A stretch of DNA of 63,107 bases, counting the filler, from Reticulomyxa filosa (taxonomy: Eukaryota > Protista > Foraminifera), in assembly GCA_000512085.1 (NCBI GenBank). It is 20 parts of 20 records of this genome, joined end to end, with 100 filler letters (N's around TTAATTAATTAA, not from the genome) between each part and the next. Parts side by side here need not be neighbours in the genome. Positions count along the whole stretch, not along the records: positions 1,815 to 14,086 come from ASPP01017118.1; 19 more parts are not named here. One strand, written 5' to 3'. Below are positions 1-14,086 of the stretch, in pieces (within the stretch, counting starts at the first letter, position 1; each line of letters begins with the position of its first letter). The translations under genes were made by a program, and so were the position numbers. Under the pieces are notes generated by a model. That model had not been told where the DNA came from and ran no database searches. It saw only the letters and a program-made list of their open reading frames with translations.

Positions 1-256
1 AACAAGAATAGGGCAATCTATGCTCTTGGAGAGCTTATTCCGTAAGGAAGAGTGCTTGGTTCGAATCCAGGAGATTGCATTAAACATTGTCAAAATTGAC
101 CGACACTACGAGACAATATAAAACCAAAAAAAAAGAATGACAACAAAAAAACCCCCCAATTTACAAACAAACACAAAATAATGAAAAAGAAATTGGAGTA
201 AAATGGAAAAATTAAAATTTTTTCATATCATAGTAGCATGAAGTTTTTCAAGTATT

Positions 257-1696
257 TCACTTTGGTTTTGGATTGGTTTGTTTGTTTGTTAATTTCGGGC
301 TACTTTTGATCCAATCGGCTGGATATCCACATTTTGCTTTATTGAGTATTTCAGCAGCTAAACATTTATCATCATTTAAAGATGCAAACATTTTGAAATC
401 AAAGTTCCCCTTTGAATCGATAAGTTTATCGGCCATTTTATCAATGGCAATGATAGCAAGTACAGTTTGAACAAAGCCATCAATCAAGTCATCTATCCCA
501 ATCCCAAGCTTGTTGAAGTCTTTGCGATCCATAATTAGCAACCTAGCAGTGTCCGTGTTCCAGACATTTTGACTCATTTTTTCCGACAGATTAGTGCCCA
601 ACATATCCCACGAGGAATGAGTAGCATGCTGTAAGTCTTTTACCAAAGGTACACGAGCCCGTCGCGAATACAATGCAACTGGTAGCCATCCATCATCTTT
701 GCTATAATGAACCTTTCATATTGTATCATTTTCATCATCACCATTTGTTCCTCTTGCATTTACAAATTTCAACAACATAGGAACACCTTCCAAAAAAAAC
801 AAAAAAAAACTCAGTGACAAACCATCATGCGAATATCTACAGCATACGTATTGCAGTGCTTATCTGGGACCGTGCCGACATGGAACAGCCTTCCCTCGCT
901 GGTAAGCGAGCTCCACGTGTAATTGCCTACCAACGACTGCACAATGAATTTTTCATACGTGGCTTCTGTCTTCATGAAGCTTTCTAATTCTTTTTTGTTC
1001 GTTATTGTATATACCCCTTGGCCAGCATTGCTATAAGGATTTTTCACCTTTTTTTTTAATTATTAAAAAAAACAAAACCACCTTTTTTTTTGAGTTCATT
1101 AAATCAATCTCCAAATAAGTGACATTCATATCACTCAATCTAAATTTCAGTTTTTTAAAAAAAAATAAACACACACACACACAAGACGTAACGACACCAA
1201 CGCCGCCAAATTTTTCAATCCACAAAGGCACTTCATCTTTGGAAACATCTTTGACTGTTTCAGGCGTGCGGATTTGAACATCAGCGAGTCCATCGTGACC
1301 CTCAGTTCCGAGTTCAGCATATCGTATGCTTTGGCAGCGACATTTTTATTGCGCCCTCCGGCCAGACAGCACAGCACAGGATTGAGAATTCTAGTCTTGG
1401 TGGCAATTGGGAAACGACTCCAGGGTGTCTGCGTCACGTAGCGAAATGCCGCTCGCACGGGAATCCATTCAAGCACTTTTCGTTCGTCTTTATTGTCTTC
1501 GGTCACCTCAATCGTCACGCGCTGGTACTTGCCCCGCTTTTTTTTGGCCTCCAATTGTTTCTTCGAGTACGTTGTTTCGCCTCGAACCCACATCACCCCG
1601 TCTTCGTCAAATCTTACCGCCGGGTCTGAATCGTTATCAAAATTTTTCACCACGTATACTTTTTCATTCATCACGTCTGCCAACGACGCTGCGTAA
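257..1696 (-). CDS. ATP-grasp-like enzyme, 5'-partial. Exons about 1696-1193, 1047-823 and 712-257
   Basis: Spliced reading gives ...[12 protein letters not shown]...[16 protein letters not shown]...[27 protein letters not shown]|[13 protein letters not shown]...FIVQSLVG...DIRMM|VHY. The K-P-xxxx-G-x-G loop, hhhQ and D-h-R motifs fit the ATP-grasp fold. GT-AG introns at 1192-1048 and 822-713. One apparent -1 frameshift near 1305. Confidence 0.7.
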
Positions 1697-1714
1697 CTTT
1701 TTTTTTTTTTTTTT

Positions 1715-1814
1715 NNNNNNNNNNNNNNNNNNNNNNNNNNNNNNNNNNNNNNNNNNNNTTAATTAATTAANNNNNNNNNNNNNNNNNNNNNNNNNNNNNN
1801 NNNNNNNNNNNNNN
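1715..1814. other. Artificial contig linker (N44-TTAATTAATTAA-N44). Identical copies start at 14087, 18042, 22011, 28129, 30162, 31489, 35200, 37513, 39807, 41857, 43282, 46016, 47539, 51971, 53360, 56930, 58053 and 60097
   Basis: Nineteen identical 100-bp spacers whose 12-mer gives stops in all six frames. Genes are cut at these spacers. Confidence 0.98.
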
Positions 1815-3577
1815 CCTGATTTTCCTTGAATTATCATCACTTTTTTTTTATTATTATGAGATGACTGTTGTTCTTGTTTTTCACTTTTTTCTTCTGATTT
1901 ATCTTCTTTTTCTTCCAACAATTTAAGCACATATTGATGACAATCATATGTTTTTTCTTTATCATCATCTTTGCTATCTTCATATGCATAATTATTTGCT
2001 TTTAATGGAATATATGTTTCAAGTGCTCGTGATATTGCAATATCATCTTCCATTTCTTGTTTTCTTGACTCTTGTAATATTGACGCAAAGTCATCACAAC
2101 TAGCCGGATTCTTGTCTCCAATGATATTTTGTTTATAATATTCATATAACTCCATATAAATAGCTTGCTCTTTTTCTTTCACTTTTTCTTTCTCTTTTGC
2201 AGTCATTTCCCTCTCTTTCTCTTTTGCATATCCTGGAGTAAAAGTACAAAGTTGCTTGTATACGAACTCTGCAATTTTCAATGATTCTTTGCTATCAATT
2301 TCTGTTTTACTTTTATTAAATAATTGTGGTGGCCTTAAAATTCCAACAGACAAATGAGATTTATAACGTTTTGCTTTTTTTTCTATTTCTTTATCATTGA
2401 TCCATTCACAGATAATATCATTAATTTTTTGTAATGTTTCATCGCTTGCTTGTTTTAGATCTTCATCTTCTAGAGTAATTGGTTCCCATGCTCTAATGCA
2501 TTCATAAAATGAATGACTTAATTTTGGATTGTTAAATACAGTATATTCTTCCAATGTTGTAAATTTTTTCAATGTTGCTTGCATCTCTACATAAACGTCA
2601 TATTGTTTATTATATAATTTAATATTATGAAAGCGATGATGTGTTTTTGATTGCTTTTCAAAAAAGTCTTTATCTTCAGAAACAATTAATTTAAATTGTT
2701 CTGCTTTTTTCATAACTCCAACTGCTGTTTGTAATTTAGCTTCATTATCACACAAAATGGTAAATCTTCCAACATCAAATGCTTTCTTAAAAGCTTTGGT
2801 ATCACTACCATAATCAAATTGAATCTTTTCTAATAATCTTTCTCTATCTTTTACTTTAAATGGGTTTACTATTTTAATAAAATATTTTTGCAGTTCTTTT
2901 ACTAAATTTAATATCTCATTACTTGCCATTGCATTTTCACTTCGACTGATTAAATCTTCTAAACTTTCTGCATGCTGGAAAATTTTATCTGCTTTCAATT
3001 TATATAATAACTCTGATTTAATTGAATACTCACATTTATAATTATTACTTTCTATGCAGGTATTATCATTACTTAAGCAAATAGAATGTTCTGAATTGAA
3101 AAATATTACCTTTGTAATTGATGTAACGGTTAATTGTTTACAATCTGGACAAAGAAAAGATGTCGTATTTGGTGCAAGTGAAATACATTTAAATTCTTCA
3201 TTCACCCATACTGGGATTTTTGCTTTCGAAGCTAAACAATTGCCATTTATGCAATAACCTTGCAAATTTATTCCTGGTCTTATTTCTCCAACTTCTGTTT
3301 TTTCCTCTTCTTTTTTAAATTCATTTAATTTTTTTTCTTCTTCTAAATCCTTTTTCAGTTTCATTAATTCAGAAATTATTTCGTTCGCTACAGCGTACAC
3401 ATTTCCGTTATTTTGTTCAAGTTGTCTTCTTAGTTCTTCTTCTTTGATAGTGCCACTGCATAATGCTCGCAAAATTTCTATCCCCTTTGTAAAATCTTTT
3501 TCTCCATTTTGCATTCCACCTAAAAGTTTTTCATTTTCTTTATAGTGAGGGACAATTTGTTTATATTTGATATGCAC
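1815..3577 (-). CDS. Putative NLR/STAND-like protein, 3'-partial: UBA/CUE-like helix, Cys-rich domain, RelA/SpoT-like nucleotidyltransferase domain and the start of a P-loop NTPase (NACHT-like)
   Basis: Uninterrupted ORF of about 590 codons. Motifs in order: GINLQGYC..C...CPDC, KVKDRERLLEK, AFDVGRFTIL, HHRFHNIKL, VEMQATL, SHSFYECIR. It ends at the contig edge in VMIIQGKSG, a hydrophobic strand plus the beginning of Walker A. True start codon unresolved. Confidence 0.7.
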
Positions 3578-4958
3578 TTACAGTTTTTTAGTGTTGTTGG
3601 ATTCAGATAGCTTAACTGCCTTCAATCTTTCTTTCATCTTCAATTAATTTTGCCATCCTTTTGAATTCATTTTTTGAAATTGTGATGTTTTTTCAGAATA
3701 ACGGAAAATTTTAACCTTGATTGTATATTGACTAATGATACCTGATCAAAGAATGAGATATCCTCTTAGCTCGCTTGTAGATTTTTGATAAGTACTAATG
3801 ATAGATTCGGTCGAAAAGTTTGAGAAAGGGGGAAAGAGAAAAAGGGAGTACACGAGGGGAAAACGCAGAACGTAGTACGTCAATCAAACGTTGCAGATAG
3901 AATTATGATTAATATCTAATAGAAAATTCTGGTTTCTTTTTAATCGTTTTTCAAAATGTATACTAATTGTACCGTTGAAAAAGGATTATCAACGAGTATT
4001 GTGCTGGCTTGATTTGATGAACAAACTGAATTGGTTTGATTGTTTGTTCCCTCTTGTTGTTTAATTGCATTACGTCCTTTAATTATAATTTTTTCCAAGA
4101 CTATTTTCGGTGTTTTCGTTTCATAGGTTTTCATAGCAAAAAATTGTATTTATTGATTAACGAGACTTTGTTTCCCTTTACAATAAAAAAATGTTATAGG
4201 ATTAAAGAAACATTTATGTGTGGTCTAGTTACTGTGATTTGCTTCATGTCGGATCATTCCCACGATAAAACTTAAATACTAAACAAAACAGATCAAAAAA
4301 AGATGTTTTGCGTTGCAATAAATTATTGAACAATTACCGGTTTTTAGTGCGTTTGAAAAGTCTTTTAAGTGGGATTAATTGAGACTAAGATCTGCAAAAC
4401 TCAAAAGTAAAAAAAAATTCTGAATACGCTAGTCTTTTTGCAACGGTACACATAATACCAACACAAAAGATTACAAGAAAATATCCATTGCTGTATATTA
4501 AATTTTTTGCTAAATTTTTAGTTTGATGTACTTTTTGTCGTTGCAAATCAACAAATCGAGCTGTCTTAAAAGTTAACGTGATTTTTTTACTTTAACTTAT
4601 CTTATAAAAAAAGTTGTTTGCATTCAAATAAAAGCACTTTACTTACCACGTCTTTTTATTTGTATGCACCCATCTTGGCATTCTTCACAAATGGTAATGC
4701 ATTATAAACTGTAAATATTATTGCGAGTTCAATAGAAGTGATGTTTGCTATTTTATTTTCTAAAAGAAAAAGACAAAGTAAATTGATATTATGACTACAA
4801 CAAAAATAATCTAAAAACTCTATCTTTGTATACTATTATTTCGCTTTTTTCAAACTTCAAACGCGAGCAATACTACATCCACACCTTCCATATTGCCTTG
4901 ATAAATTAATAAAAGCACATAAATAGATTTAAATCAATGGAGTGATTCCATATTTCAC

Positions 4959-6730
4959 TTATTTGCAAAATTTGTCATATTGTGCACACGTCAATAATAT
5001 CATTTGTGTATATACATCTTCATTTTCTACTTTTGCATTCCATGCAAATTCTTCTTTTTGTAATTTCTCGTCCTTTGTGGGATTAACAAAAGATCTTGAA
5101 AACAGGGTCTCACATTCGTGTTTGTAGGGAGATAACCATGATACGTCACAGCTACTTATTTTATCTACTTTTCTCATAGACGGATGAAAATGTAAAATAC
5201 ATCCTTGATCATTTCTAAACATTTGCGCAACTTGAATATCATCAGAAGTGCTTACATAACTTATGAAAAATCCTGATTTTATTTCTTTAATATTCTCCAA
5301 TCTCACATTTTTCAATCTACAATATAATTCAATTTCACTTTCTTTTCTTCTTTCATGTTTATGCAAAATATTTATAGCCTCCTGCAAATAGAAATCCAAA
5401 TAAGGCCATTTATGATGTCTAAATTGGATTTGATCATAACTGAATTGAACATTACATGTTTACTACAATACAATAAAATTGCACAAATATACCATAATTG
5501 AAGTGGATATCCCATATGTTCGTGAATATCATCTGATACAATATCTTCAATTCATCTAATATTGTTAATATTTTATCATTTAATATCAATTCACCATTTT
5601 CATCCTTTTCATTGTAATTAATTTATTGTTTAGTTCTTTCATAAAACTTTATTTCCTCTTTTTGTTTTTTGTGTATTGAAATGTCATTAAAAAAAATTCA
5701 ACCAGATGTAAATAACAATACATATATGTAATAGATTTAATAACTGAAAGACAGTTTGATAAATCATCTCTATCTTGCCAATCAATTGCACGAAAGTACC
5801 AAATGTGATTGAGAACCAGACAAGCCCACTTCGCATGTGTGTTATCGACATTAGAAAAGTCATTGTAATATTGAATATGAACATTGAATTCCAATGATGA
5901 TTTCTTTGGATTTCCAACTTGCAATGACTCTATTTTTATTTTTTTAATTTTGAACTCAATAACATTATTGTTCGATGTTGATAATTAAATACAATTTCAT
6001 AATCTTTCCATTTTCTATTCGACAACATACACACTGTTGTCGGAACATAATATCTTCTTTTGTATCTATTATTTTTTATTAGAATAAATATCACTTGCAG
6101 TATAACAATAAAACAAACACATATCAATAGTACATGATTTGTTCATTGGCAAATGCTTTGTAATATTTCCACAGGGTTAATAATTGAATATTTTCATTTA
6201 GATTATAACAATTATTATCATTGCATTTTTCAAATCCAAAACATTGTAAATAATATTCTATAATCCCAAATATTCGATAAACATTTTCACGTATTTGATG
6301 ATGCAAAATGTTAAGTAAGTTATGATGACTGATTTGTCGATATTTAATATATTTGGGATATTTTAAAAGATCCTAACTTGTTGGTATTGTAATTGCAGCA
6401 AATTTCTTGCATTTTTACACCTGTTTCAATAAAAATTTGATTGGAATTTTTCCATGTTTGTAATATTTTTGTTTTTTCGACTTTAGTTCCAAAATCTTTG
6501 AATAATTGCATCAAATACTTTTGATGTTCCAATGTTGTGCTGTATTCAATACAATATTAAAAAGATCAACGTACTTTTTGATATGAAAAAACAAGTTTTT
6601 GTAACGTGTTTTCTGTAATCAAAATCAGCATAGTCTTTGTCTCATCACTATTTCCATTGCAGTATTTCCATGCTTCTCCGATAACTTCTTTGTCTATCTT
6701 GGGAAAAATTTGTTGAAGATGTTCGAGCAT
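4959..6730 (-). pseudogene. Multi-exon CUE-like / PUB-like / mono-ADP-ribosyltransferase-like gene with frameshifts (pseudogene or sequencing errors)
   Basis: ATG at 6730 (MLEHLQQIFPKIDKEVIGEAW, CUE-like). The C-terminal domain has ELYCRLKNV, YVSTSDD and SPYKHECETLFSRS, matching the STS and ExE motifs of R-S-E-type ARTs. Single-base deletions near 5537 and 5458. Confidence 0.65.
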
Positions 6731-7326
6731 GGACGAAGATTGAAGCTTGTTTTGCCCCTTGCACGCTAAACATTTGGTTTATTTAATTTATTAGTTGTTG
6801 CACAGTGATTTTATAATGAAACTCAAATACTATTACCAGTTTCCAAATTAGATTATTTATTTAGTTGACGGAAGCCGTCAATATCCTTGCCTTCCTTCTT
6901 ATCTGTCTGCAAATTGTGAATTAATTAAAATTGAGTCAATATTGTTTTGAATAGTCTTATAAAGAGTCACAAAATAATTCCCATGATTTCAAAAACAGGA
7001 ATCCATCTTTAAGAAACAAGAAAAGTAGCAGTAGTGGATTTATTTATCTACATTTTCTTATTTTTGTTATTCAGTCCGTTCCAAGCGTTAAAAGACAATT
7101 TAAACATCTCAGGTCTTTTTATAATGAATTATCCTTTCCTCTAGGGGCAATATTGCCCGACATATGAAGTATTTTTTTTGATCGTTTTATAGATATTTTT
7201 CTTAACAAACAATTATCTCAAAAATTAAAACAACCATTTTGTGCTCTTACAAATATAATTATCCACGTTATTAGCTGTACAAAAATATGGGAATATCAAG
7301 AAAAAAAAAGATATTTGAAGCCTTAT

Positions 7327-8787
7327 TTACATAATGTATTCACTCAAATTTCTCACAGCATTTTTTACAGCTAATGCTCTTCTATCGAATTGTCCCGACA
7401 CAACATCGTATATCTTCCATGCTTCTTCATAATATTTACGTGCATTCTTTTCTTCTTCCATTCTGTAAAAAGTAAATGCCAAATCGGCATTTGCATCAGC
7501 AACAACACAACTTTTTTTTCCAAACAGCAATTCCTTTTTTTCTAAAGATTTTAAAAACCAATCAATCGCTGTTTGATATTCTTTTTTGTCTCTAAAAATA
7601 TTTCCTAATTTTCTATACATATCAGCAACAAATATGTGATTGTTCCCAAAAGTATGTAATGCAATTTGTAAAGCTTTTTCATAATTTTCAATTGCTTTGT
7701 CATATTGTTTTATTCTTTTATATGTGATTCCTAAATTATTATATAAATTAGCAATCCAAGTGTGATTTGTCCCAAAAATAACTAAGCTGATTTCTAAAGA
7801 TTTTTGATACATTCGATTGCTTTATCCCATTGTTGATTATGTAAATAAGCAAGTCCTAAATTATTGTACGTATTGGCGACATAAGGATGAATAATACCAA
7901 AATTTTCGACACAAAGTTTTACTGCTTGTTCTAGTTGTAAAGAAGCTTCATTTAAGAGTTTTTGTTTTGCATATTCATCTGCTTCATTTTCAAACTTTTG
8001 AACTCGTACTGGAATATCATGATGTATTTTGTTATTCCATTGAATAGGTGAAATAGATAATTTCAATGTTTCATCAATAATAACATCTTTTATTACAAAT
8101 AATTGAGTTGTGATCTCTACATGTCCTTTACATTGAATTTGGCAATCAATTGCATATACATTTCCATCAATACTTACCTCATCCAACATTACCAATTTTT
8201 GTTTAATTAAATACATTTTGTATTCTCCAAATTCTTTACGTTCTAATTTACTGCTGTTTATCAATCCAACAAATAAAGATGTATTTGGGTTATTTGATCC
8301 AATAATATTATTGGCAATAATAATTAGGCCTTGTTCATTCTTTTGAATCATTTGTTCGACAGCTTTTGCAGCTTCCACGTTTGCTTTTATCCAAGATACA
8401 CTCCAGTGCTTCCAAAAATCTAAAGTATTCATCTCTTTTTCATTTGATATCGGCGATATTTCATCCTTTTTGTTGTCATCGTCATCATTTTTTGATTCTA
8501 TTTTTTATAACTTTGATTTTTTTATTATTATTAAAAGACAAAAAAAAGATACTTGATTGGAAATAAGCAATAAATTCAAGTTGATTACATCCAATAGCTT
8601 TCTGAAGATGTTCGTCAGTTTCAATATCCTCTCCATTAATGTTAGTAATCTTAAGTTTACATTCATTTTCTTGTTGAACGACCTTACATTCTTCAAGTAC
8701 TTGTTTTTTGAAGTGTACTAGTGCCAAGGCCGACAACTTAAGTTCATATTTTTCTGAAGCAATTGACACAATAACTTTCCAGGACAT
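7327..8787 (-). CDS. TPR-repeat protein (kinesin-light-chain/TPR_12-type repeats) with a short ubiquitin/PB1-like N-terminal domain
   Basis: Repeats of ...HPYVANTYNNLGLAY...AIE.YQKSLEI...FG.NH.WIANLYNNLG. Intron at about 8552-8498. Frameshift in an A-run near 7812. Confidence 0.8.
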
Positions 8788-9391
8788 TACTAAATTTCTC
8801 AAATAAGTTTTTTAAATACACCTCTGTTCAATATTTGCTAGATTTATTTTGACAGTTGGAAAAAACTCGTTACGGAAAAAAAACAGTTATTTTCGTGTTT
8901 TTTTGCAGTCGATTGTAAATACAGCAGAATTTAAAAAAGATTTTGCTCATATCATGCACTAAAGTGTGTTGATCAAGTACACCTAATGTCTGATTGGACA
9001 AATACAAATAAGAATCAGTAGCAATTATATGCGTTAGTAAACGACTACGAATCGCATTGGGTTGGCCACAAAGGATGGCAAACAACAGAGGAGATTTTGT
9101 TCAAATACAAGTGGCGTGCAAAAAGAGTAGATTGAAAAGTTAAAACACTAACAGAACAACCACCAAAAATTGGGAAAAAAAAAAATCGACAACACAATGC
9201 ATCTCAAAACCAGAAAAAAACTTTGTGAGCAAAGGAACAACAACATATCAACTTTTTTCACCAAAAAAAAAACACAAAAGAACAAAAACAACCCCCATTG
9301 TTGGTTGCTTCATTTACAATAAGAACAAAGAGTCTTTTTTTTATTTATTTATTTATTCCCTTTTTTTTTTTAAAAAATGCTTGAGGAGGTG

Positions 9392-12300
9392 TTATTTTCC
9401 AAATAATGAGACAATGCCTCCCATCACGTTCGGTAACGAAATTACTGACTCAGTGTCATCACTGTTTTTTAGTTCTTTGATTCTATGCAAAGCAGAAAAG
9501 GAAAAAAAAAAGGTAAGTGTTTGTGGTTGTTTATGTTTGTGTCATCTCTTTCAAAATAATCTAAACTGTTTTTGCAATTGTTTGATATAATCTCTCAATT
9601 TGTTCATTTCAACCATTGTTTGTCGAACATATTCCACTTTGCTCTGTCTCAAAACGTCAGCTTCTTCTTGTGATCGTTTGATAATTAATTCAAACTGCTC
9701 TTTCCTAAGCAATCCAATAAACAATTTTTTTTTTAAATTTTTTTTTTTAAAAAAAGATCAAAGTAAAAAAAAAAAAAAAAATACTCTCTTGAAACATAAC
9801 ATAGTATTCCACTCTTGTTGCGAAGTTTTGAAAGATTGCTTGAGATGGGCAATATCAGTTTGTAGTGACTCCAAATCTTGAATTTGTTTTTTTGACTCTT
9901 TGAGCTCTTCTTTCAGTTTTTTGTTTTTATTTTTTTGCTTTTGTACAGTTTTTTGTGATTTTTCAGTTTTCTTTTGCAACTCGTTGAGTGCTTTGATGTT
10001 CTCTTTTAGTTGTTGTTCCAAGTTTTGATAGTTTTGTTCGTACGTTTGAATTTTCTGTTGAAACTTTTCTTTTTTGTCGGTGAAGCCTTTTTGGAAACTG
10101 CTTAATTTGTTGACCAAGTCTTCGTTGCCGTGTTTCAATAACTTGTTTTCGGCTTCCAATTGCTTCAATTTTTCAGAAAGCTCGTTGTTGGCGGCAATTA
10201 GTTTGGGGTCATTTTGGATGATTACCTTCTTGCTTTCCTCATGGTTCACATTGCCATTGTGATGAAGATGAGAAGCGCCATTCACGCCGGAGTGGTTCAA
10301 ATTGCTATTGTTGTCGATATTGCCATTGCCATGCATATTCATATTCATATTCAACATATTGCCATTGCCACCGAGCTGTGGAACATGCATACCATTGACG
10401 ACGGCCTTTGCAGCAGCGGTAGCAGTAGCGCTGTCACTACCATCAATATTATTACTGTTGTTGCCGTTGGGCGCATGGGGATTGTTTGTACGCAAAACGG
10501 TAAAGGTTTGCTCCATGGCTTGTGCTAATGACATCTTCGTTTGCTCGTATATCTCTTTGTGACTGGATGTCATGCTTTCCAATTGCTGCTTCGAAAACTG
10601 ATCGTTGCCCAGTTTTGCGTTGAGCTCGTCAATTTGTGCGCGGTAAAATCTTTCCAATTCCTGCAGCTTTTGATTGGCGACCATTTCAAACTGCTCCACT
10701 TCGGCCACAAACTCCTTCTCCTGATCCGCCAACATCTCTTTCAATTGGTTGATTTCCTCGCGGAGATCGTCCTCTTCGCGGTTTTGCAGATCTCGGCCAA
10801 AGCCTCCTTCCAACTTTTCCGCCTCCAAGCTCTTCACGCGGCTGGTCAGCTGTTCAATGTGTTGGTTCTTGATCTCCAACGTGTCGTGCAGTTTCTGTTC
10901 CTGATAATGGGTCTGGTTCTTGAACTTTTCAAATTCGTCACGAACTATTCCTAACTCGATCTTGTATTCTTCTGCATTTGGATCTATCAAAATAAAAAAA
11001 TAAAAATTCAATACAAATTATATTGTATACGTATACACACATATAAATGTATAGTAGTATATGAATATACATATATGTATATATATATATATATATATAT
11101 TATTCTAACCGCTAGCTGCATTGTTCATTTCAACCATTTTTTGTTGGAATTCAATTTCCAAATTGTTACAGCGTTCAAAGATCTTGCTCCACCATTGTCG
11201 CGAACGGTTGATCATTTGGTTCATGCCGTTTTTCAAAGTCTTAATTTCTGTTTGTCTCGACTGGCGCAAAGCTTCAATGTGTCTTTGCAAGTCTTCGACC
11301 AATTGAGCTTTGTCGTCATACATGGACTGCAACTCCGCAAGCGTCATTTTGGACTCGCGATGTTGGAAGGACGACTTTTTATCGTCGACATGCAGCAACG
11401 GTCCTGGATTGCCATTCTTCTCCTCTTCGTCGCTGCTGCTTTGCCAGCTCAGCAATTCGTCGTTTTGTGGCGCGACTGCGACCGTGGCAGGGTCGAGTGC
11501 GTTCTTCCAAGTCGGGCTGTTGCGCGAGTGGGCCTCGGCAGTGGGACTGTTCGCCGGCGTTTCCTCCAAGTCGCGTTTGCGGCTGACAGAAGTGGGGAGT
11601 TGCAAGTTGCGAACATCTGCAATGTCTTGTTCCGTGGCTGGTTGGTTGGAACGATATGCCAAGTCCGACTTCACTTCTCGGATTTCTTGTCTCAGTCTAT
11701 TCACTTCGCCTTGCATGTCCATGCCTGTAAAGCTTGATCGTCGACGTTCACTGGCACGTTTGCGTCTTTGAACCTTTTTATTCCCCCACCATCACCATAT
11801 GATTATATATTGTTTGGATACGAATATTGATTGTGTAAAAAAAGTTGAAAGACTAAAAGTTGGATGTAACCCCCAACTTCTTTCTTTAGAGGATCCAAGA
11901 CTTCCTTTTCAGACTCAATTCTCTCTTGCTTTTCCAAGATTGCACGAATGGCGTCCATGCTTTCGCGTCGTTTTTGCTCTTCGACATTTTTACCGGATGA
12001 GTGAGGAGACAAATGGCTCGACTCTCGTTTGCCGTCTTGCTTTTGTTCATTTGCGACAGCAAGAGACAATTTTGGTCCCGTTTTCTGTATATACATATAC
12101 ACATATACATATACGTATGTATATATAATATATAATATTTTGTGTACAGATGATGTTTTGACGTGAATTTATCCCCAAACAAACAAACAAACAAACAAAA
12201 ATAAAAAGAGTGAATAAACTGTTGAGTCATCATTGACAAAGAGATCGACATCGTCTTTGTTGCCTCCGAGTTCAATATATTTCGACAGCAATTTGTGTAG

Positions 12301-14021
12301 CTTCTTCTCCATGACCTCTTGGTCGTGTTGAACTATTTTCAGTCGATTATTCAAAATGTCTATTCCCTGATCTCTTTCCGTCAGCAAGTTTCCAACGGCG
12401 TCTAATTCCGTGGTCAACTCATTCAATAACGTCTTTTTTTTGGATTTGTGTGTTGTGTGTTTTTGAAAATCGCTTTAAGTGGATTTTCTTTTCTTTTTTT
12501 TTTAAAAAATAAACTTTGGATTTAGCAATGTCCACACTGTGTTCAGTTGGCGAGTTGCTTGGCCTTATGACGGCGGTCAAGTCCCCAATGATTTGACGAC
12601 ACTTTCGAAGATGAGGGGTGGCGGACACGGAGCTGATGGCATTTTTATTGCGCGATTTGTCGCCACCTTTGTTGTGGAGGGCGTCTTGTTCCGTCACGAT
12701 GTTCGCCGTCACACCCGAAAGAAGTATCGGCGATTGTGACGTCAGGCTATTCAATGTGTTGGTCATTTCTCGAATTTCCTCGTCTTTGTCACGGATTTGG
12801 ATATGAGCCTCCATCAAAGCCTCTTCCAATTGTGCCAATCGCGTGTCATTCTATTGCGAAACAGTTTCAAGTTTTGACAATCAAAGTTGCAAATCTATAT
12901 TTTTAAAAGAGAGAAAAATAAAAAATAAAATGCACAAACGTTGGAAGAATTGACATTGGTAGTAGCATTAACATTGACATTAGCATTAGCATTGGTATTG
13001 ACATTGACATTGACTTTGGTGTCAGGATTTGCATTTGCATTTGCATTTGCATTTGCATTTGTATTTGAATTTGAATTTGAATTTGGACTAGGGTTGGAAG
13101 TAGGATTAGCAATGATCGTCTTACGCATTTGCAATTCGTCTTGCAATTTTTCAATGATTTCATTTTGCTTATTTTCGATCAAGTCTTTTTCGTGGTTGAA
13201 GGCATTTTGCAATTGGTTTTGCATTTTTTTGAAATGTGCCCGTTCGTACTTCCTTCGCATTTGCAGCTCTTCCAATTGCTTGGAGATTTCGTTGTAATTG
13301 GTTCGCCACGTCTTCTCCGCTTCCACCAGCTGCATCAACTCTCCACTGGTTCTTTGGAGCATTTGGCACACGTTGCGAATCTCGGTCGACTTGCGCGGGT
13401 CGGGTGTTTCCCTCGCGACTTGTTCCAGGAACCTGATATATTTCGTTGCCTCCTCCGAAGATTGCTTCAAGCCTTGTTCTAACTTGGCCTGTAGCGAGGC
13501 TATCTCTTCTTCCAATCTTTATTTATTTTTTTTAAAAAAATATTTTTGCAAAATAAAAGTGTGGTAAAATAAATTAATAAGTAAAATGTATAATATGCAT
13601 ATATATATTTATATGTACTATATATTTATGTACATATAAAAAGTTTAACCTTGCTTGTTCAGAAGATCTTCTCTCTGTAATTGCTCGCTCTTGTGCCAAT
13701 TCGTCTTGCAAATTGGACTTGCGGTCGCGTAGTTTGCGCAACTTTTCGGACATGTCTTGAATGGTTTGGTGGTATTCCTTGCGCACTTCGGCCAGTGTCG
13801 TGGCGAGGATGTTCAATTGCTCCTCAAACTTTTCGATTTGCTTGTCGTTCTCCATCAACAGGGTACCCGCAGTTTTGATCTCACTTAGCGAGCCTTCCAA
13901 CACTTCGTATATTATTGCCAGTGAGTCGTTCGTGTTATTCGTCACGCTGGCCGTCACCGACATCCACTCGTTTTGGTCGTTCGACTTGCCTAGTTCACTG
14001 TGAGCTGTTCGCAATGCGTTC
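9392..14021 (-). CDS. Large multi-exon coiled-coil protein, 5'-partial, function unknown
   Basis: Successive E/K/Q/L-rich heptad exons (ORFs 13574-14041, 12895-13515, 12419-12838, 12169-12426, 11105-11722, 9758-11011) separated by AT-microsatellite introns. Last exon ends ...GIVSLFGK* at 9392. Confidence 0.7.
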
Positions 14022-14049
14022 TGTTTTAAATAAATAAACAAGTAAATAA

Positions 14050-14086
<37 letters not shown>

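Follow-up and report, generated by a model that had tools for sequence, protein, structure and literature searches.

What kind of gene runs off the edge of one contig of the foraminiferan Reticulomyxa filosa? The window analysed here (63,107 nucleotides, filler included) holds contig C17118 entire at positions 1815-14086 (12,272 bases), and at the beginning of that contig lies a minus-strand open frame that a sequence-only reading had taken for a NOD-like receptor (NLR) of the STAND class (signal transduction ATPases with numerous domains), with a RelA/SpoT-type alarmone synthetase as its effector. Judged by profile matches and a predicted fold, the motif-bearing region of the frame is a real RelA/SpoT-type synthetase domain, whose best match is the bacterial toxin Tas1; in the paralogs, this domain is followed by a NACHT module and an array of WD40 repeats. 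By analogy with known receptors, we hold it rather probable that the frame encodes the N-terminal 587 residues of a member of an NLR-like STAND family that acts as a sensor-triggered pyrophosphokinase.

The use of RelA_SpoT by fungal NLRs as an N-terminal effector domain, on which the sequence-only reading drew, is documented: RELA_SPOT-NACHT-WD40 is a rare fungal NLR architecture, with RelA_SpoT making up <1% of the annotated NLR N-terminal domains of fungi (Dyrka et al. 2014, PMC4986451). The chemistry that it ascribed to the toxSAS/CapRel enzymes, (pp)pApp synthesis or tRNA pyrophosphorylation, is documented as well (PMC7229694, PMC11782079), and the effectors listed for NACHT proteins of bacteria include alarmone synthetases (Kibby et al., bioRxiv 10.1101/2022.07.19.500537). 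A full-text literature search, which did not extend to the R. filosa genome paper (10.1016/j.cub.2013.11.027), found no paper joining Reticulomyxa with NACHT or RelA_SpoT; the sole paper with both Reticulomyxa and NLR was unrelated (cnidarian apoptosis), no relevant paper joined Foraminifera with NACHT, and no description of a Rhizaria NLR repertoire was found.

The NCBI protein of R. filosa that corresponds to the frame (P0001, 99% identity) is named "viral A-type inclusion protein, partial", an example of the uninformative or wrong public gene names in this family. The sequence-only reading had guessed at a rhizarian-like protist, and correctly so. Relative to our frame, the NCBI gene model has 13 more residues, from an upstream exon, and lacks 21 nt called as an intron; these exon and intron choices have no effect on the domain analysis. 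We number residues from nt 3577 (residue 1); the earliest in-frame ATG is at nt 3514.

A predicted Tas1-like synthetase domain

All five synthetase motifs of RelA/SpoT homologues (RSH) that had been claimed between positions 2870 and 2485 are present in the translation, at residues 241-364 (nt 2857-2486; Table 1). The Pfam family RelA_SpoT (PF04607), whose gathering score is 27 bits, aligns with this region of the window copy at E 8.7e-4 and 20 bits (24.6 bits in a six-frame genome scan); the threshold is reached by the paralogs P0002 (30.2), P0020 (27.9) and P0040 (27.0), and at least 13 genomic copies lie above it in the six-frame scan. A PDB sequence search with the single window sequence gave nothing, and Tas1 was found by the family profile only: made from an alignment (A1) of 23 copies of the domain and run against all PDB sequences, this profile had Tas1 as its single match, at E 0.0019. 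In the alignment the family's K-x3-R-x3-K pairs with KSRERAMQK of Tas1, and FDIGRFTIL with KDLARNTII. When 23 copies of the domain were scanned with PADLOC and NCBIfam, the matches were scattered and at chance level only.

The predicted structure points to the same protein. For an AlphaFold2 model of residues 200-420 (predicted local distance difference test, pLDDT, 78.5), the top 50 Foldseek matches were RSH alarmone synthetases only, Tas1 coming first at E 4e-6. On re-alignment with VIA-align, Tas1 (6ox6_A) aligned over 170 residues with a root mean square deviation (rmsd) of 3.4 A and reached Z 12.8; the scores were Z 10-11 for RelQ, RelP and an exported synthetase of Streptomyces, 10 for CapRel, ~8 for the long Rel/RelA/SpoT enzymes, and ~7 for unrelated nucleotidyltransferases. 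The sequence-only reading had staked itself on a match to the RelA/SpoT nucleotidyltransferase fold, and the predicted model does have the alpha/beta nucleotidyltransferase fold of the small alarmone synthetase (SAS) type. Because of the Pfam match, the scores of the paralogs, the match between the family profile and Tas1, and the alarmone-synthetase fold of the model, we conclude that the motif set is not a product of chance.

Paralogs continue into NACHT and WD40 repeats

The frame reaches the first base of the contig at ...KKKVMIIQGKS. Its final bases, ATG ATA ATT CAA GGA AAA TCA GG, give MIIQGKS and a codon that is Gly whatever base comes next, so translation bears out the VMIIQGKSG reported for the contig end; the ~200 residues said to separate the last motif from the start of the P-loop measure ~220. 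Because the frame is open up to the contig's first base, its termination is that of the contig and not a stop codon.

What lies beyond this edge can be read in the paralogs. The R. filosa assembly is very fragmented (~102 Mb in 50,809 contigs), and the copy numbers given here are lower bounds that include pseudogenes. A genome scan with the synthetase profile gave at least 151 matches (150 scored of 552 candidates), many of them within uninterrupted frames of 1,570-1,880 aa (the longest 1,883 aa), and ~50 R. filosa paralogs, many of which have NACHT, came out of a word-indexed search of proteins. At the point where the window frame is cut, 25 of the 25 paralogous frames that pass the junction read V[MI]I[IL]QGKSGSGKS[LI]FCRHLE, a Walker A motif, and downstream of it comes the NACHT family PF05729, above threshold and with 34-49 bits in family copies. 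The NACHT assignment had been made to hang on QGKSG being followed in paralogs by xGK[ST] and such a domain, and this is the arrangement found.

The sensor repeats anticipated after NACHT, WD40 or TPR, are WD40 in the full-length paralogs: in the five that were scanned out of six uninterrupted frames (1,751-1,883 aa), Pfam recognises 12-16 WD40 repeats at about residues 1,040-1,830. Comparison of 81 WD40 units gave a conserved 42-aa scaffold on which positions 6, 7, 9, 10 and 25 are hypervariable (entropy 3.2-3.9 bits), and variable positions on a conserved unit are the pattern of recognition-type WD40 propellers. Among six full-length paralogs, identity is highest in the synthetase core (73-85%) and lowest in the WD40 region (44-58%). 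An enzymatic head that is conserved, joined to a repeat tail that diversifies, is an NLR-type receptor signature. Neighbouring repeats in the WD40 region of one paralog have 69-76% DNA identity, unlike the near-identical repeats of some fungal NLRs, and we make no claim of concerted evolution.

In one paralog that was checked (L035, 2406-3668, minus strand), pentapeptide repeats (PF00805, 27.7 bits for a threshold of 20.2) occupy residues ~1,000-1,050, behind the NACHT region and ahead of the first WD40 repeat; no Pfam family matched the Lys/Glu-rich linker that joins the synthetase domain to NACHT. The order of the architecture, read from the window copy and the uninterrupted paralogs, is then UBA-like bundle, four-Cys beta domain, Tas1-like synthetase, charged linker, NACHT, pentapeptide stretch and 10-16 WD40 repeats.

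Some paralogs have two synthetase modules in a single frame, as in L025 (G000:C6763:832-4479), whose plus-strand frame 1-3063 has FDxGRF at residue 181 and again at residue 563, with one P-loop at residue 854. The synthetase domain of P0002, at residues 507-722, stands behind a lengthy N-terminal region in which there are two zinc-ribbon-like matches.

Active-site residues, distant relatives and alternative explanations

We counted residues over ~90 distinct copies of the family. In the first motif, K243 is kept in 87/89, R247 in 83/89 and K251 in 89/90; in the second, D268 in 88/92 and R271 in 87/90. Further on, E331 is kept in 82/83, Q333 in 84/86, H355 in 84/88 and Y358 in 87/88. The window copy has all of D268, E331, Q333, K243, R247 and K251, each of which is 93-99% kept across the family.

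Several observations weigh against a family of active, sensor-triggered synthetases. First, the window copy is under the Pfam threshold (20 vs 27 bits). Second, Thr stands where the canonical ExQxRT motif has Arg (E-M-Q-A-T-L), and the G-loop Tyr that stacks on the acceptor is replaced by His in most copies: the loop reads T-H-H-R-F-H in the window copy, and position 314 is His in 70 of 93 copies and Tyr in 19. Because of these two replacements, the substrate, and even catalysis, could differ from those of the known RSH enzymes, and a standard (p)ppGpp synthetase is, by the same residues, an unlikely identity for the domain; the fold is not argued against. Third, stop codons interrupt the domain in about 15 of the 150 scored copies (~10%), so some members of the family are pseudogenes. 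Fourth, the contig ends inside Walker A; we infer that the window copy continues into NACHT because its frame is cut in exact register with the paralogs. Finally, the hydrolase argument made below is weak evidence because the assembly is in so many contigs.

The two replacements of the second point, together with marginal Pfam scores (20-30 bits) and the presence of two more conserved N-terminal modules, could be explained if the RelA/SpoT-like domain were a pseudoenzyme serving as a scaffold or oligomerisation adaptor, the output coming from the UBA-like module, the four-Cys module or partner proteins. We consider this improbable. K243, R247, K251, D268, E331 and Q333, the counterparts of residues that bind Mg and ATP in RSH enzymes, are ~95% kept over ~90 diverged copies, and no part of the protein is better conserved than the synthetase core, which is unexpected for a decayed active site. 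The same non-canonical variants are moreover found in Tas1, over the aligned N-terminal motifs, and Tas1 is an active enzyme.

On another explanation the window copy is a dead remnant, or belongs to a repeat family whose spread has nothing to do with recognition; the locus would then hold a pseudogene, or a repeat collapsed in assembly, without receptor function. The stop codons counted above speak for it, as do the halt of the frame where the contig ends, the highly repetitive nature of the family in so fragmented an assembly, and the several paralog frames that end shortly after the synthetase domain. Yet the window copy has 587 stop-free codons at 28% GC (the whole contig has 33%), a composition in which chance stops are frequent; every key residue is intact; and the cut falls in exact register with the Walker A of the paralogs, as expected of a simple contig end. 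We give this explanation little credence.

Relatives outside the organism bear on what the domain may do. When 1.84 billion representative proteins were searched exhaustively with the profile, there were only 93 matches at E<=1e-3, 44 of them at 1e-10. The stronger matches, where identified, were R. filosa proteins or unnamed metagenomic ones; in the distant matches, the RelA_SpoT-like domain is fused to eCIS-core, phage Mu F/SPP1 gp7, DUF285 or TPR_10/TPR_12 repeats. Because of these fusion contexts we place the domain in the toxin/conflict-system wing of the RSH superfamily. Of 20 distant matches scanned with Pfam, only one also has NACHT, the metagenomic protein P0093 (L045), with ankyrin repeats upstream of its RelA_SpoT-like domain and NACHT downstream. 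Two distant relatives come from other named protists, P0110 of Triparma laevis, with TPR plus C1, and P0104 of Guillardia theta, a protein of 1,281 aa with the synthetase-like domain at its C-terminal end. The matches of the profile search that were examined included no recognisable fungal NLR, and a kinship to the RelA_SpoT NLRs of fungi is thus not demonstrated.

The same architecture could also have a gentler output, the synthetase making a diffusible messenger, (p)ppGpp or a related pyrophosphorylated nucleotide, that acts on downstream proteins and is not itself a toxin. Signalling is the role of the classical RSH and SAS enzymes, which the model matches (Z 10-11) nearly as well as it does Tas1; lists of bacterial NACHT effectors include generators of nucleotide signals; and the 19 copies with Tyr at position 314 have the residue of the guanine-binding G-loop. 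We nevertheless regard a messenger as unlikely, given that the best match in both sequence and structure is the toxin Tas1, that the eCIS-core, phage Mu F/SPP1 gp7 and DUF285 fusions of the distant relatives are toxin-type contexts, and that no HD_4 hydrolase with which to reset the signal was found in R. filosa-like contigs. In the assembly, this alarmone hydrolase domain (PF13328) was found only on three bacterial-looking contigs of <900 bp with 61-65% GC; its absence elsewhere weakly favours a toxic over a resettable output.

The three contigs, C8583 (L037), C32270 (L038) and C7084 (L047), measure 492-885 bp. C8583 and C32270 encode canonical long RelA/SpoT enzymes with HD_4 and RelA_SpoT (70-79 bits for RelA_SpoT), and C7084 has HD_4 alone; HD_4 scores 174 bits on C8583 and C7084. 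All three are probably bacterial contamination of the assembly.

Features of the frame and its N-terminal modules

Table 1. Features of the open frame at the beginning of contig C17118, in window positions
Feature	Residues	Position	Strand	Basis or remark
Open frame, 5' part of NLR-like gene		1815..3577	minus	587 codons, stop-free
UBA/CUE-like three-helix bundle (predicted)	22-81	3335..3514	minus	AlphaFold2 model from alignment A2
Four-Cys beta domain (predicted), C-x4-C ... C-P-D-C	97-203	2969..3289	minus	conserved in copies
Tas1-like RelA/SpoT (small alarmone synthetase) domain (predicted)	204-393	2399..2968	minus	Pfam, profile, predicted fold
Pfam RelA_SpoT core	242-334	2576-2854	minus	PF04607 alignment
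Motif KVKDRERLLEK	241-251	2857-2825	minus	translation
Motif FDVGRFTIL	267-275		minus	translation
Asp268 codon (FDVGRF), presumed Mg-binding catalytic Asp		2774..2776	minus	pairs with D of Tas1 KDLARNTII
Motif SKTHHRFHNIKL	310-321		minus	translation
Motif YVEMQATL	329-336		minus	translation
Glu331 codon (VEMQ), presumed catalytic Glu of ExQ motif		2585..2587	minus	inside Pfam-aligned stretch
Motif SHSFYECIRAW	354-364	to ~2486	minus	translation
Lys/Glu-rich linker, synthetase domain to NACHT	420-575	1853..2320	minus	60-64% identity among full-length paralogs
Beta strand and start of NACHT Walker A, VMIIQGKS(G)		1815..1840	minus	25/25 paralogs alike; cut by contig end

The sequence-only reading had added a UBA/CUE-like helix and a Cys-rich domain that may couple the protein to ubiquitin. 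The Cys-rich region is conserved, and the helical part is plausibly UBA-like in its predicted fold only: no Pfam UBA or CUE match was obtained for this segment, even at E<=1-10, and the putative ubiquitin link hangs on a modest fold match. In an AlphaFold2 model of the N-terminal region (pLDDT 84.6), made from an alignment (A2) of 26 copies, residues 22-81 form the bundle, and UBA or CUE domains made up most of its matches in a wide VIA-align search, the two first ranks going to an HBS1-like and a DSX domain. Among the matches were 1otr, a CUE-ubiquitin complex (Z 6.5), the TNK1 UBA (6.4), the SMARCAD1 CUE (6.3) and the Dcn1 UBA (5.9); the UBA/CUE matches have Z 5-7 and rmsd 1.5-2.2 A over 45-57 residues, all of them under Z 8, the confidence level of the tool. 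The segment is conserved in the paralogs L032 and L034 and absent from the main frame of most of the paralogs compared, in which it may lie in an upstream exon. One further copy (L031:600-6248, minus strand) has a ~50-residue in-frame insertion of atypical composition inside the UBA-like segment, which may be an unspliced in-frame intron.

The Cys-rich region was found in every copy examined. C88, C93, C122, P123, D124 and C125 (numbered as in alignment A2) are invariant in its 26 copies, and C-x4-C ... C-P-D-C is probably a zinc site. The domain is modelled as all-beta with pLDDT 82-95. Foldseek gave no significant match for the N-terminal model, and the four-Cys domain is unclassified; FHA, jelly-roll and beta-gamma-crystallin-like matches were weak (Z 5-6) and we did not accept them.

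Neighbouring genes and other NACHT genes

Upstream of the NLR-like frame and on the same strand, the open reading frames (ORFs) 7794-8432 and 7327-7812 encode NPHP3-type TPR_12/TPR_10 repeats (E 4e-35). ORF 4959-5399, also on the minus strand, has no Pfam match and gave nothing in a PDB sequence search; it shows R, STS and ExE-like motifs, and the ESM Atlas clusters that come closest to it are NAD-protein-arginine ADP-ribosyltransferases (score 0.95, with 175 features in common). These ORFs, 4959-5399 and 7327-8432, may be one gene with TPR repeats and an ADP-ribosyltransferase-like end. Farther along, at 9758-14041 on the minus strand, there is a series of coiled-coil ORFs with weak matches of the HOOK, ATG16 and IFT57 types, interrupted by low-complexity Asn/Gly/His-rich and Asn-Ala repeats with a local GC of 47-52%; a coiled-coil protein of this sort would fit the name "viral A-type inclusion protein" better than the NLR fragment does. 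Scans of the contig for Rfam families and tRNAs were empty.

The genome scan for NACHT gave 315 candidates overall. Five of the contigs concerned, C15901, C11739, C12889, C1568 and C7270 (L048-L052), carry a second NACHT clade (61-79 bits, in frames of 1,259-1,895 aa), with no Pfam-recognisable domain in the 10-165 residues ahead of the P-loop. Because this clade exists, we count more than one NLR-like class in R. filosa.

Proposed mechanism and implications

A sensor-triggered pyrophosphokinase of this architecture would work, by analogy with NLR/STAND receptors and with toxSAS enzymes, as follows. A ligand that marks non-self or danger would bind to the WD40 propellers; the NACHT module would then oligomerise; and the clustering of the synthetase domains, or their release from autoinhibition, would turn them on. 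Once active they would move pyrophosphate from ATP to an acceptor, the likeliest being an adenine nucleotide, which would yield (pp)pApp and deplete ATP as Tas1 does; the alternative acceptor is the CCA end of tRNA, as for CapRel and FaRel2. The outcome would be arrest or death of the affected cytoplasm in a syncytial organism. R. filosa is multinucleate and forms networks, and as a hypothesis, again by analogy, we draw a parallel with the filamentous fungi, whose NLR expansions are tied to non-self recognition.

We put forward more tentatively, as something that may well prove otherwise, that R. filosa holds a repertoire of hundreds of NLR-like receptors whose shared Tas1-like output arose independently of the fungi or from a separate bacterial source, and that nucleotide poisoning or tRNA pyrophosphorylation is its main cell-autonomous death effector in immunity or allorecognition. 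If true, (pp)pApp and tRNA chemistry, so far belonging to bacterial warfare and anti-phage defence, would serve a eukaryotic syncytium. Plants, animals and fungi, and now bacteria, have well-studied NLR repertoires, and Rhizaria would be added to these. More than 150 RelA/SpoT-NACHT-WD40 genes in one organism amount to many natural variants of a single effector, with which the action of RelA_SpoT in a eukaryotic NLR could be addressed, and we know of no experiment on the effector role of RelA_SpoT in fungal NLRs; the family bears on whether alarmone-type or toxSAS-type chemistry works in eukaryotic cytoplasm. It would also extend a pattern of the fungi, whose big and varied sets of NLRs accompany a body plan that is syncytial and fusing; this points to allorecognition or to the defence of a shared cytoplasm.

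Comparison with known systems

Four known systems invite comparison. The bacterial NACHT (bNACHT) proteins resemble the R. filosa family in fusing NACHT to a nucleotide-modifying effector; they differ in that the R. filosa family is eukaryotic, has a long WD40 array and runs to hundreds of copies. The toxSAS/CapRel enzymes (FaRel, FaRel2, CapRel) share the small alarmone synthetase fold, CapRel at Z 10, and would share the proposed logic of a toxic pyrophosphokinase kept inactive until a trigger arrives, the sensor of CapRel lying in the same polypeptide. However, CapRel senses through a small C-terminal pseudo-ZFD, whereas the R. filosa sensor would be NACHT with WD40 propellers, and the R. 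filosa gene has no antitoxin gene context and no match to PADLOC models.

Tas1 (Apk1), the type VI (p)ppApp synthetase toxin of Pseudomonas aeruginosa (6ox6), is the best match in both sequence and structure, and its first two synthetase motifs take the shared forms K-x3-R-x3-K and D-x-[GA]-R-x-T-I, although its identity to the R. filosa domain is no more than 16-18%. Bacteria secrete Tas1 as an effector and have a cognate immunity protein for it, whereas the R. filosa domain lies inside a predicted intracellular eukaryotic STAND receptor; Pfam scans of the window copy and its paralogs detected no delivery domain such as those of Tas1-type toxins.

The fungal RelA_SpoT NLRs share the effector-NACHT-WD40 order and a regular 42-aa WD40 unit, and their hosts are likewise syncytial and network-forming. 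R. filosa, in contrast, belongs to Rhizaria (Foraminifera) and not to Fungi; its class is dominant and massively expanded (at least 151 copies); it adds the UBA-like and four-Cys modules upstream and a pentapeptide stretch between NACHT and WD40; and its synthetase domain is divergent. The design is thus a known one, and what is new is the lineage, the very large expansion, the divergent Tas1-like effector and the two extra N-terminal modules.

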